From assembly GCF_001194135.2 (NCBI RefSeq), contig NC_068998.1:50168671-50232670 (forward strand): DNA of 64,000 nt, given 5' to 3'. Positions 444 through 63,437 of this stretch are shown here, piece by piece (position 1 is the stretch's first letter; each line of letters starts with the position of its first letter). The notes under the pieces were generated by a model that ran no database searches, was not told the DNA's origin, and saw only the letters and a program-made list of their open reading frames with translations. A program made the translations under genes and the position numbers. This DNA is from Octopus bimaculoides (taxonomy: Eukaryota).

Positions 444-3400
444 GAGTATCTTTCTCAAGACGCTGCGACGAACTGGCAAAACGACATTGCGCAGTGAAAT
501 ACGAGGCATATCGACGTTATGACCCCGACTGTACGTATGTATCATCGTATTTCCACGTTTAGATTTACAAACTGTAGATTGTTCCTGTAACTATGTATGT
601 ATATNNNNNNNNNNNNNNNNNNNNNNNNNNNNNNNNNNNNNNNNNNNNNNNNNNNNNNNNNNNNNNNNNNNNNNNNNNNNNNNNNNNNNNNNNNNNNNNN
701 NNNNNNNNNNNNNNNNNNNNNNNNNNNNNNNNNNNNNNNNNNNNNNNNNNNNNNNNNNNNNNNNNNNNNNNNNNNNNNNNNNNNNNNNNNNNNNNNNNNN
801 NNNNNNNNNNNNNNNNNNNNNNNNNNNNNNNNNNNNNNNNNNNNNNNNNNNNNNNNNNNNNNNNNNNNNNNNNNNNNNNNNNNNNNNNNNNNNNNNNNNN
901 NNNNNNNNNNNNNNNNNNNNNNNNNNNNNNNNNNNNNNNNNNNNNNNNNNNNNNNNNNNNNNNNNNNNNNNNNNNNNNNNNNNNNNNNNNNNNNNNNNNN
1001 NNNNNNNNNNNNNNNNNNNNNNNNNNNNNNNNNNNNNNNNNNNNNNNNNNNNNNNNNNNNTATATATATATATATATATATATATATCCTTTGTTATATA
1101 TATGTATATCCCGTGTTATAAACAAGCTGAAACCACTTTTCATGCGTAGCGTCCAATACTATATGAACTCATCACGAAGCGTGAGTTATTTTCCGTCATT
1201 TAAAGATTTTATGCATTCGAAGAACAGATATTCCTTATTAGTAACATCGTTTTAGTTCACAAATTAGGGCGTATATCAAGTACAAGACAATATATCGCGA
1301 AATTACTTACTCCATATTTAAATAACCGTCAAAATGATTATGATGAGAGTTTCGTTAACGCATACTTTAATGTCCAACACAGTTTATGTATTTTATAACT
1401 GTTATTAACATGAAAGGTTAATTCACTCTATTCGTTCGCCTTAAAGGCATACAATCATTAATTAAGCTTTTTGTTGAAGGCAAAAAGTCTATAATTTGTG
1501 TGAGTGTGGTCTCCCAGTACAAAGACTCCAGTGCTCAACTGTATTTCTTTTATCGTCTCGAAAAAGAATAAACAAAGCGTCGACCTCAGCACCATATGAA
1601 CTTAGAACGTAAACACGGATAGAATCGCGATAAGCATTTTGTCTATATTTTTACTAAAACTCTTCTCCTAAAAACATTTTGGACCAATATTCGATGTATA
1701 ATATTTGAAGTGTAATAATGTTAATAGTAAATATAAGTTTGGCACATCGTCGTTATGCAACCAAGACTTAAGTAGGCTCAATAACGCAAGAAAATCATAT
1801 CATTAATGCAGGAAATTTAGAAGTTTTTTATTTTAAATAACAGTGTCATGTTTCTTCGTTTTTCCAGAGGTTATAAAAAGTTTCTGGCATGCTTTCATGG
1901 ACAAGATGGGAAATGTTATGGATTCTTTAAATACCAGCCTAACTGTATGGTAAGGGATGTGTTTTTATTTTCACTCTAATGATGTACATTTATGACAGTG
2001 AATAATATAATACATTGCATTGTATATGCATCATTCATCGATTACACTTAGAATAGAAAACCACTTCTGACAAGCGATAAAACTAATGTTAAAAATCTAC
2101 AACTCAGTTGTACTAAATTATACAATACATAATATTCCCATTATAATTGCCATTTAGGCAATATTCGATACGAAGTCTGGCCAACCGTAATGATGCCAGA
2201 GGAACAACTTTGTGTATTTCATATTTTGGAAGAACAAATGAGGAAGCATGTTAATAGTTTGTTTTCAGTAGGGAATGTAGTAAAATAAACATTTGTTAAA
2301 GCAATCTCAATAATGGCGGTAAACATTCACTTCACATCAAATACAAACGCCAATGTTTGAGTCCTTCATAATTTACAAAACGTTTTACGATTATTTTGAT
2401 AAGATGTTGGAATGATTTGCGTGGTATATGTCTAAAACACATCACGAATGTGAATAATAACGAAGAAGATGAATTGTGTCGCCTAAATCTTTTCGGGAGA
2501 AGTGTTTTAATGAATATATATCAAAATATTTCTCTCACCAGTTTTGCAATCGATGTAAACTAAATTTTAATTAGGATACTAAATGAATGAGTTTTGTCTG
2601 TCCAAGTGATCCTTATTAATTAATGTATCAGTGTCCAATAAATCGATAAAAATACGAGAAACAATCTGTATCATTTTGATTGTGTCTTTATATTTGAAAT
2701 GACTTTAAATACGAACATTGTGCCGCTATTCAATTTACTATATATTCTCTCTCAAATTTCAGCACAGGAATACCTCAAATAAGAAAGTAATGGTATGTGA
2801 TTGTGATTTCCCCGTAAATATTACAAATATATGATAATCTTACTACAATAACCTCGGTATTCATTCCATTTAACTACAGCATGTACCAGATACGCCGGTG
2901 TGTAAAACACATAATTTGTTTAAACATAAACTAAAAAAATTACCAGTAAGGAGTGAGTCCATAATATGAATATAGGACCGAATATTGCTCACGCAATCGC
3001 GCTTAGTCGTCCTCACCATGGGTTACTTAAATAACTTCCATGTTTGCCACCTCTGACCATCACGAAAGAGTAGGACATATACATGGTTACAAGATCAACT
3101 CCATTTGTTTAAGCTTTTTTTTTATTGTATTTTAAGAATTAAATCTAAATTGTAAATTCCTAATATCATTTTACGTAGAAGATCCATTTCCTGAAGTTTT
3201 ATCAGACATTTCTTTATGGTTATTTAACCGTCCAAAAACATTGACTGTTTGCAGAGCTCAATATGATGTAATTGCTATATACCCATTACTAATTGCAGTG
3301 TTATTATGATACCATTTCAAATCAGTTTAAACACCAATCCAATGAGAAATTCCATATTACATTTGTATTAACATTTATAGTTATTTATGAATATACCAAA

Positions 3401-3864
3401 ACATGAGAGACAATTTCTTTTGTCTAGAAAATACACGAGTAATCTCACAATAGCGGAAGCTTCTCACATGAATATCGTGAAATTCTCTTCAATTTGGAAT
3501 CACTCCAGCAGCCTAACTGAGACAGCGAGAAGTGAAGTTGGCTTCGTCATGGACAGTTTTCATCTGTCATTTCTTTATGAACAAAACCTATCACGGATGT
3601 TCTCTGTAGTCATTGTTATCTCTCTGATGACTGTACTACATTGTGTTTGAATCCAATGATGTTTTACGACAAGATCGATCGCGATATAAAGTAAAGTAAC
3701 TGTAGCTAGTATTCAATGCTAAATAATATATTATAACATGTTTGCATATATATCATATCAATTTACTTTCATTAATTATATATTGTTTTCTATTCTATTG
3801 CCAGGTGACATTTCACCAAGTATTCCTTACAGTTCTTGGCGTTACATTATTAATAAAATACTGA
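444..3864 (+). CDS. Gene A (5' partial): small 6-Cys protein with hydrophobic C-terminal, GPI-like tail
   Basis: Exons 444-534, 1868-1949, 2763-2792, 3805-3864, all AG/GT with matching phases. Translation: (G)VSFSRRCDELAKRHCAVKYEAYRRYDPDCT-GYKKFLACFHGQDGKCYGFFKYQPNCM-HRNTSNKKVM-VTFHQVFLTVLGVTLLIKY*. The signal-peptide exon is presumably upstream of the window. Confidence 0.85.
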
Positions 3865-61327: not shown

Positions 61328-63437
61328 ATGAGAAATCTTATTCTTCTTATATTCGCTTTTCACATTGGTATGTAGAATCAGGGAAACAATTTTCTGTCTA
61401 TATACCTTATGAAATTCTATATCGATTGTATTTATATTAATATCTTTGCATCAATATATTATACACATTTATACTTATGGCTGTATATTTTTATCTATCA
61501 AATTATTTGCACTTTCACGTATACATCTATATTGCTCCGTACTTAAGCTTATATATTTCAGACTGAGATACAAATATATATGTGGAAGACCGTAGTCTCG
61601 ATACGTAAAAAAAACACATTCTTTTCTGTTAATGAGAACAACATATGTATACATATAATCTTTTATTCTTTTTTACTTGTTTAAGTCATTTGATTGCGGC
61701 CTAGTACTTATTCCATCGGTCTCTTTTTCCGAACCCCTAAGTTACAGGGGCGTAAACACAGCACCATCGGATGTCAAAAGATGTTAGGGGGGTACAGACA
61801 GGGTCACACAAACATACACACACACGCGCGCAAACACACGCACACACACAGACACACACACACACACATATATATATATATATATATATATATATATATA
61901 TATATATATATATATANNNNNNNNNNNNNNNNNNNNNNNNNNNNNNNNNNNNNNNNNNNNNNNNNNNNNNNNNNNNNNNNNNNNNNNNNNNNNNNNNNNN
62001 NNNNNNNNNNNNNNNNNNNNNNNNNNNNNNNNNNNNNNNNNNNNNNNNNNNNNNNNNNNNNNNNNNNNNNNNNNNNNNNNNNNNNNNNNNNNNNNNNNNN
62101 NNNNNNNNNNNNNNNNNNNNNNNNNNNNNNNNNNNNNNNNNNNNNNNNNNNNNNNNNNNNNNNNNNNNNNNNNNNNNNNNNNNNNNNNNNNNNNNNNNNN
62201 NNNNNNNNNNNNNNNNNNNNNNNNNNNNNNNNNNNNNNNNNNNNNNNNNNNNNNNNNNNNNNNNNNNNNNNNNNNNNNNNNNNNNNNNNNNNNNNNNNNN
62301 NNNNNNNNNNNNNNNNNNNNNNNNNNNNNNNNNATATATGTTTTTACGTGTCATTATTAGGTTCAAGCGATGGAAGCATATCTGAGAGTATTTCTTAGCA
62401 CATTTAGTGCTCACATTGCATATCAAAACGAAAATAGGTCGATAAGATAAAAGACAAACGAGCGAAAGAGAGAGAGGGGGGAGAGGGGAGAGAGAAAGAG
62501 AGAGAGGAGGAGAGAGAGAGAAAGAGAGAGATAGAGAGGAAGTGAGAGAGAGAGAGAAATATAGAGAGAGAAAGAGAGAGAGAGGGAGGGAGAGAGAGAA
62601 AGGGAGAGAGAGAAAGAGAGAGAGAGAAAGAGAGAGAGNNNNNNNNNNAGAGAGAAAGATAGAGAGAGAGAAATATAGAGAGAGAAAGAGAGAGAGAGGG
62701 AGGGAGAGAGAGAAAGGGAGAGAGAGAAAGAGAGAGAGAGAAAGAGAGAGAGAGAGAAAGAGAGAGGGAGAGAGAAAGAGAGAGAAACTGATGCAACGCT
62801 GGAATTAGTCTAACCTGGGCGTAGGTTCACAGTTTTTCAGGCAAGGTGTAAATTGTTTACACCACTCGTACTTCTTGACAGGTAATTATTTTGTCGGCAC
62901 CAAAAGTTTGCGAAGACAAATTCGATGAAGATAGAATTTGAAATCTGACGTAATGTAGGTCTAAAGGAAGCTAAGTTGTGTGCCCGGCATACGAATGATT
63001 CTGCAAGCTCGCGTACGAATTGTTCCTTCGCACATGAGCGTAAGTTAAATGTCAGTTACGAATATCCATAAAAACGTACTAGAAAACAATCTCTGCGAAC
63101 TACCACTAATTACGGACAGGGAAGTTTATAATTAGTGTAGAACGATATTGATTTGTCTATCCTTCTATTTACAACCAAGTGCCATATGTACTGCATTGAA
63201 ACTTGAAAATGATCTAAGGATTTGGGAAAGCCACATTATAATGGCTTCGTCATTCTGTTCAGAAAGTACTTTCCAAGTGTCTTTTATTCAGTACACAAAA
63301 ACAGGCAAGACATAACACTGTAATTTCTAATTTATAGATGAATTAGTCAATGGAAAAATACCAATGTGTATTTTAAATACAACCCGATGCAAACATCTAA
63401 AGCAGAAGGATGTGGAGGGGACGGAAGACATTTGCCT
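61328..63437 (+). CDS. Gene H (3' partial): family member, signal exon and first Cys exon
   Basis: Exons 61328-61367 and 63338-63437: MRNLILLIFAFHID-ELVNGKIPMCILNTTRCKHLKQKDVEGTEDIC(L). Same splice flanks and phases as gene E. Remaining exons lie beyond the window. Confidence 0.82.

Follow-up and report, generated by a model that had tools for sequence, protein, structure and literature searches.

Ly6/uPAR proteins such as CD59, Lynx1 and Bouncer consist of a single disulfide-rich domain with a mature length of about 60–80 residues, carry a signal peptide and a glycosylphosphatidylinositol (GPI)-type C-terminus, and are encoded in tandem clusters that diversify rapidly. A similar set of traits is seen in the family of small proteins described here, which is encoded in part by a 64,000-nucleotide stretch of the Octopus bimaculoides genome (CM046618.1:50,168,671-50,232,670, assembly GCA_001194135.2; hereafter, the window). 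The genes of the window form one section of a tandem array, which belongs to an Octopus-restricted multigene family that has not been described so far. The Ly6/uPAR proteins, as tethered ligands or receptor modulators, provide the nearest functional analogy, but they have 8–10 Cys that include a CCxxxxCN motif and adopt a beta three-finger fold, whereas the octopus family has six Cys and is predicted to be all-alpha. Cephalopod genomes contain many lineage-restricted genes of unknown role, and the present family is a compact, well-defined case, with at least 17 clustered genes and a confident predicted fold that matches no solved structure.

Several other described systems share parts of this layout. 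Plant GPI-anchored lipid-transfer proteins (LTPG) also have a signal peptide and a GPI signal in addition to a small helical domain stapled by disulfides, but they belong to a different kingdom and carry an eight-Cys motif with CC and CxC; no sequence match to LTPG was found in a Pfam scan of 17 octopus family members. Neuritin (CPG15) and the N-domain of RGM proteins are likewise helical six-Cys modules of GPI-anchored proteins, and differ in the spacing of their outer Cys residues (x7/x13 and x9 in the octopus family, x10/x24 and x27 in neuritin, x4/x22 and x22 in RGM). Conotoxin-type superfamilies and the mussel MgCRP-I proteins (PMC4558851) resemble the family in their conserved signal, hypervariable mature region, invariant Cys framework and local duplication, but are secreted without a hydrophobic C-terminal signal and use other Cys frameworks, and no sequence relation to them was detected.

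Gene structure of the array

Comparison of the window with itself revealed a series of diverged direct repeats (66–79% identical). The three plus-strand frames were scanned for C-x7-C-x13-C and C-x7-C-x9-C, giving candidates for exons 2 and 3, respectively, each of which is bordered by a polypyrimidine tract with AG and by GTAAG or GTATG. When hidden Markov models (HMMs) of the two exons were searched against the six-frame translation, they matched only at these loci (1e-14 to 1e-17, the next best matches being at 0.02–0.1), which rules out a chance pattern. Exons 4 and 5 were placed by means of RefSeq proteins and alignment. The exon-by-exon rebuilding confirmed the eight paralogous loci, arranged in tandem on the plus strand, that had been proposed in a first-pass annotation of the window, the outer limits of which (444 and 63437) correspond to exon 2 of the first locus and exon 2 of the last. 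The loci are labelled A, B, G, C, D, E, F and H in their order along the window.

All modelled exons are bounded by AG and GT at their junctions, with splice phases of 1/2/0/0. Exon 1 occurs in two lengths, 37 nt (B, G, C) and 40 nt (D, F, H), while that of A lies outside the window and that of E is dead. Exon 2 spans 91–103 nt, except in E, where it has 70 nt. A length of 82 nt for exon 3 is shared by A, B, C, D, E and F, whereas G has 88 nt. Exon 4, a phase-0 micro-exon, measures 30–39 nt. Counting the stop codon, exon 5 has 69 nt in F and 60 nt in each of A, B, G, C, D and E. The phases and sizes proposed earlier (37 or 40 nt for exon 1, 82 nt for exon 3 in six genes and 60 nt for the tail in six) all hold. 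The proposed scaffold, C-x7-C-x13-C-x8-C-x7-C-x9-C, is exact in A, B, C, D and F, but three loci deviate from it: the x13 interval is x14 in H, exon 2 of E has lost 24 nt, and G has seven Cys with a different spacing.

Exon 1 reads as M(R/K) and about 11 hydrophobic residues, then G/GTATGTAG, and sits inside a conserved block of about 600 bp that contains a TATAAATAA box. Among C, D, F and H, the approximately 350–400 bp 5' of exon 1, including this box, are about 77–84% identical (positions 30190-30592 of the window in D), and a counterpart is also found upstream of E. At these four loci the upstream block is conserved as well as, or better than, the coding exons, which suggests shared regulation.

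At seven of the eight loci the reading frame is open, the splice sites are canonical and no scaffold Cys is missing. For A, G, C, D and H the spliced product agrees exactly with an independent RefSeq protein, as does the sequence of exons 1–3 and 5 of F. Six of the eight loci are in fact present in RefSeq as 'uncharacterized protein' (A, LOC128249945; G, LOC128249943; C, LOC128249946; D, LOC128249940; F, LOC128249829; H, LOC128249830), several of them with X1 and X2 isoforms, so that the description of the array as hidden was overstated for O. bimaculoides. It is correct that open reading frames alone do not recover these genes, as a plain list of frames of at least 110 aa contains none of the eight. 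The related view that such genes are easily missed by annotation does not apply to the six in RefSeq, but is fair for O. vulgaris, in which a single fused 257-aa model covers four or more syntenic genes. B is intact as modelled and was not found among annotated proteins. These two cases, a set of orthologues merged into a single hypothetical protein and an intact gene absent from the annotated proteins, are a warning for annotation. The count of eight genes also needs qualification: the eight loci are real, but E is a probable pseudogene, and the window covers only part of a family of at least 17 loci that extends over about 1 Mb.

Reach of the family and comparison with described proteins

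A profile of the mature domain was searched against 1.84 billion representative proteins and gave 18 matches at E ≤ 1e-3. Seventeen of these are from O. bimaculoides, comprising 16 RefSeq models that all map to the chromosome of the window and an older UniProt entry for gene D, and the sole remaining match is a 'hypothetical predicted protein' of O. vulgaris (CAI9735853.1, 257 aa), the model of which spans 59 kb. No members outside Octopus were found in this search, which may reflect missing annotation elsewhere, since no other cephalopod genome was searched directly, and the matches from word-seeded protein searches were exclusively O. bimaculoides proteins. The placed members lie at 49.29–50.26 Mb of CM046618.1, on both strands, and beyond the end of the window the array goes on with the rest of H, LOC128249831 and LOC128249832.

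In O. vulgaris, at least four separate family genes were located at OX597831.1:18,491,096-18,570,078 using the exon HMMs and tblastn. Their order is that of H, LOC128249831 and LOC128249832, and the counterpart of LOC128249832 is duplicated. All five exons were found for the LOC128249831 orthologue and for one of the LOC128249832 copies; the scan gave the H orthologue without exon 1 and the other LOC128249832 copy without exon 5. The presence of syntenic orthologues in O. vulgaris indicates that the family is older than the split between the two species. No description of the family was found in the literature, and it is the family that is new here; orphan Cys-rich tandem families are already known as a kind, and most members are in RefSeq.

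In an alignment of 17 members, five Cys are invariant and one Cys and one Phe are nearly so, the mean column identity is 26%, and the sequences are 20–42% identical to the reference sequence. All begin with a signal peptide and end in a weakly hydrophobic C-terminus preceded by a short polar linker. Structure prediction with AlphaFold2 was poor when based on an eight-sequence alignment (predicted local distance difference test, pLDDT, of 61), while the 17-sequence alignment gave a model with a mean pLDDT of 84 (above 90 in the core), consisting of four helices and no strands. In this model the six Cys are arranged pairwise on helices 1, 3 and 4, with two to three helical turns separating the members of each pair, an arrangement from which three disulfides may be predicted.

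The first-pass annotation could not assign the proteins to any known family, and the searches agree. Pfam scans of five window products and of the 17 aligned members returned nothing above threshold, a profile search of PDB sequences gave a single chance match (E 0.98), and Foldseek comparison of the pLDDT-84 model with the PDB and with viral structures (BFVD) gave no match at E ≤ 1. The exclusion of a Ly6/three-finger relationship was also sound: the 17 members have six Cys, no CC pair and no CN or CCxxxxCN motif, the predicted fold is all-helical, and UPAR_LY6 was absent from the Pfam families listed at E ≤ 10 for the members scanned. Membership of Ly6/uPAR is ruled out by the number of Cys, the missing CCxxxxCN, the helical predicted fold and the lack of a Pfam match.

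Two further candidates were rejected. The CHCH twin Cx9C family (PF16860) gave a single weak match (E 0.046); proteins of this type have two Cx9C helices, lack a signal peptide and reside in the mitochondrial intermembrane space, and the octopus proteins have spacings of x7/x8/x9 on three helices and a secretory signal in every member. A tandem array of SF1 toxin genes in octopods (10.64898/2026.02.02.703354) encodes tachykinin and neurotensin-like precursors and is not the octopus Cys family.

Probable anchoring, divergence and competing explanations

We consider it probable that the family specifies GPI-tethered, disulfide-stapled helical mini-proteins with a diversifying exposed face, which serve in extracellular binding or recognition, although this applies to the molecular picture and any specific biological role, such as the gamete or self/non-self recognition, immunity or chemosensing suggested in the first-pass annotation, is much less certain. 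A precursor of about 100 residues is encoded by five small exons, with exon 1 and the first residues of exon 2 providing a cleavable signal peptide, and exons 2 and 3 a six-Cys domain of about 55 residues for which a compact bundle of four helices, stabilised by three disulfides, is predicted. Exon 4 contributes a polar, Ser/Asn/Gly-rich segment with a probable omega site, and exon 5 a weakly hydrophobic, 19-residue C-terminus that is not long enough to cross a membrane and would be lost upon GPI addition. The mature product would then be a helical mini-protein of about 60 residues on the outer face of the cell membrane, and may work in extracellular recognition, either as a ligand tethered to the membrane or as an accessory to a receptor. 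Copies arise by local duplication of single exons or whole genes, and some decay; duplication of a single exon, in addition to whole genes, is seen at exon 4 of gene F. A more ambitious form of this picture is rather unlikely when taken as a whole. It would make the proteins a new, octopod-confined fold family of helical, three-disulfide, GPI-tethered mini-proteins with a positively selected surface, forming a recognition or receptor-modulating repertoire like the Ly6 'prototoxins' that might, for example, tune the expanded nicotinic-like chemotactile receptors or operate in gamete or self recognition.

The sequences of all members with an exon 1 begin with M(K/R) and 10–12 hydrophobic residues followed by small residues, as expected of a signal peptide. 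At the other end, a rule-based omega scan detected a triplet of small residues (e.g., SSS, GSS, NTS, DGS, NSG or DSS) 23–27 residues before the C-terminus in 13 of the 17 members. The triplet is followed by a Lys-rich polar spacer, 12–15 hydrophobic residues and 1–4 terminal residues, and the 12-residue C-terminal window has a mean hydropathy of 1.7–3.0. A small-residue triplet, polar spacer and short hydrophobic end make up a textbook GPI attachment signal, and a hydrophobic stretch of 12–15 residues is too short for a membrane helix. The combination of signal peptide and C-terminal hydrophobic tail pointed out in the first-pass annotation is upheld, and on the basis of the rule-based scan the family is probably GPI-anchored.

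The residues between the Cys mostly differ, as had been noted, and three comparisons show that they evolve fast. Among the paralogues C, D, E, F and H, exons 2–4 are 58–78% identical, compared to 67–88% for the 120 nt of intron on each side, and exons 1 and 5 are conserved to the same degree as their own flanks. The ratio of nonsynonymous to synonymous substitution (dN/dS) in the paralogue ectodomain, with Cys codons excluded, is 0.8–1.2 for intact pairs and higher for pairs that include the probable pseudogene E, while the A–B tail has a dN/dS of 0.15. When O. bimaculoides genes are compared with their presumed O. vulgaris orthologues, the proportions of nonsynonymous and synonymous differences (pN and pS) over 99 codons of the ectodomain exons are 0.19 and 0.11, a dN/dS of about 1.9, and in the LOC128249831 orthologue the tail exon is 90% identical compared to 60–77% for the ectodomain. 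These values suggest positive selection on the ectodomain. Seven of the eight copies, and the genes of both species, have kept their open frames and scaffold residues, which speaks against pure drift, and the preservation of the Cys and aromatic scaffold, signal and tail while exposed residues change fast points to a binding surface under diversifying selection. A membrane tether is likely, and the substitution pattern is of the type seen in molecules with a changing binding partner. If expression were found in suckers, gonads, haemocytes or neurons alone, the family would offer a direct handle on octopus-specific recognition biology.

Several observations weigh against the tethered, diversifying picture. 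The A–B pair does not show the lower identity of exons relative to introns. The selection signal between species is weak (99 codons; one-sided p of about 0.06, a rough estimate from rounded proportions), with orthology assumed from synteny, and a paralogue dN/dS near 1 is compatible with relaxed constraint as well. Four of the 17 members have no omega site by the rule used, alternative isoforms of gene D lose the signal peptide, and no transcript-derived copy of the family proteins was seen in the protein collection.

The main alternative is that the products are unanchored and secreted in soluble form, as Cys-rich peptides of the toxin, antimicrobial or pheromone type, for example, and that the hydrophobic exon is a propeptide or sorting signal. 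A conserved signal with a hypervariable mature region and a fixed Cys framework is the classic conotoxin-type pattern, and RefSeq isoform X2 of LOC128249931 stops before the tail. In agreement with this alternative, the salivary glands of cephalopods are reported to have 27 superfamilies of short secreted proteins of unknown function, many of them without homologues outside Cephalopoda (10.64898/2026.02.02.703354, 2026 preprint). However, the tail exon is retained in 16 of the 17 members, is constant in length and is better conserved than the ectodomain, and the small-residue site lies at a GPI-typical distance before it, a layout that a mere propeptide would not need. Secretion without an anchor is a serious but somewhat unlikely explanation.

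Distant kinship with neuritin and RGM would be compatible with both the anchored and the secreted readings. The proteins would then form a very divergent branch of the neuritin or RGM N-domains and act as tethered ligands or co-receptors of signalling receptors. The central spacing C-x8-C-x7-C, which is the sole tie to described families and is not significant, is common to the octopus family, RGMA/B/C (PDB sequences) and human neuritin, and the handful of weak Pfam matches included those to RGM_N (PF06535; 15.6 and 13.2 bits, in two members and in the same register) and to neuritin NRN1 (PF15056; E 0.012, in one of 17 members). These matches are below the gathering scores of 24.2 for RGM_N and 27 bits for NRN1, for which the human neuritin control scored 134 bits. 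The probabilities given by hhalign, over about 25 columns, were 0.3% against RGM_N and 0.4% against neuritin, the latter covering only 26 columns around C-x8-C-x7-C. Foldseek retrieved no RGM chain from the PDB at E ≤ 10, even though 4uhy, 4uhz and 4ui1 are present in the PDB sequence copy, and the outer Cys spacings differ widely. Membership of either family was rejected on the sub-threshold scores, the hhalign values below 1% and the absence of a Foldseek match, and common descent is judged quite improbable, with the C-x8-C-x7-C spacing kept as a lead.

That the copies are mostly decaying, non-functional duplicates, their hypervariability reflecting neutral drift, is very improbable: it would accommodate the paralogue dN/dS near 1, the dead locus E and a relic exon 1 (see below), but not the seven loci of eight that keep an open frame, canonical splice sites and every scaffold Cys, the (near) invariance of six Cys and one Phe across 17 sequences of such low identity, the intact five-exon orthologues in O. 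vulgaris, or the constraint on the signal and tail exons seen, for instance, in the A–B tail.

Gene models along the window

The window has an A+T content of 66%, abundant microsatellites and 14 runs of N, and it agrees base for base with a locus retrieved from CM046618.1. All of these gaps are intronic or intergenic and none touches an exon, the nearest being 70 nt away. Microsatellites of (TA)n or ATT border 12 of the 14, indicating that they represent repeats the assembler did not cross and not joins of unrelated scaffold sequence. Five gaps are crossed in frame by the RefSeq proteins of A, G, F and H; these models were built on the same assembly, and extra exons or copies could still lie inside the gaps. 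The features described below are all on the plus strand.

Gene A (LOC128249945; 444..3864) enters the window at exon 2 (444-534), its first exon being off-window, and continues with exon 3 (1868-1949), exon 4 (2763-2792) and exon 5 (3805-3864). The spliced product equals the RefSeq protein of 99 aa, and RefSeq isoform X1 has a longer exon 4 (2763-2813). A gap at 605-1060 lies within intron 2, 70 nt past exon 2. Gene B (6009..9010) has exons at 6009-6045, 6955-7045, 7468-7549, 8072-8101 and 8951-9010, an open frame and canonical splice sites throughout. Its product is 99 aa long, and this exact sequence was not found in a collection of 15 billion proteins.

Between B and G, the region 11547-11746 aligns with 5856-6055, which covers the promoter and exon 1 of gene B. 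It contains the relic exon 1 of a lost copy (11700..11736), in which ATG has become ATA and the donor GGTAAG has become GGTTAG. No further exons of this copy were found between B and G, where a gap (14078-14865) lies downstream. An exon-2-like peptide at about 11523-11560 was dismissed as a chance resemblance, the stretch being homologous to the gene B promoter.

Gene G (LOC128249943; 15376..18696) is a divergent member with exons at 15376-15412, 16280-16382, 17127-17214, 17700-17738 (isoform X1 only) and 18637-18696, and its products equal RefSeq proteins of 95 aa and 108 aa. Intron 1 contains a gap (15736-15840). Gene C (LOC128249946; 20985..24710, or CM046618.1:50,189,655-50,193,380) has exons at 20985-21021, 21541-21634, 23275-23356, 24012-24047 and 24651-24710, and a product identical to the RefSeq protein of 102 aa. 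The spacer between C and D includes a 115-bp tandem repeat of 3.1 copies that are 99% identical (25880-26234).

Gene D (LOC128249940; 30553..35232) has exons at 30553-30592, 31498-31591, 33184-33265, 34535-34570 and 35173-35232, and its product matches the 103-aa RefSeq protein (isoform X2). The conserved TATAAATAA is located about 50 nt 5' of the ATG. Isoform X1 uses an alternative first exon at 27293-27406, which specifies 38 residues without a signal peptide and may represent an upstream read-through transcript rather than a functional isoform. Intron 3 of this gene carries a 64-bp element twice, in inverted orientation and 98% identical (33588-33651 and 34360-34423). The first copy is not present in the paralogues and has a 10-bp duplication (CGTAGGAAAA) on its flanks, and the element looks like the footprint of a small mobile element.

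Locus E (37699..42719) consists of an exon 1 remnant at about 37699-37735 and exons 2–5 at 39096-39165, 41014-41095, 41969-41998 and 42660-42719, with gaps in introns 1 (38049-38566) and 2 (39250-39423). It has no in-frame ATG, a corrupted signal sequence, the 24-nt deletion in exon 2 and a shifted exon-4 acceptor, and on these grounds is probably a pseudogene. None of the protein searches made returned a protein matching it.

Gene F (LOC128249829; 48201..58677) begins with exons at 48201-48240, 49371-49470 and 52053-52134, and has gaps in introns 1 and 3. These exons are followed by a 1.5-kb unit in three tandem copies (53801-57775), each with one phase-0 exon-4 micro-exon (54370-54405, 55909-55941 and 57393-57425). 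Exon 5 (58609-58677) is 69 nt long, its stop codon being shifted. The RefSeq protein of 130 aa contains all three copies of exon 4, showing that the linker has been lengthened by exon duplication. Gene H (LOC128249830; 61328..63437) is represented by exon 1 (61328-61367) and exon 2 (63338-63437), with exons 3–5 past the end of the window, and its full product equals the RefSeq protein of 117 aa.

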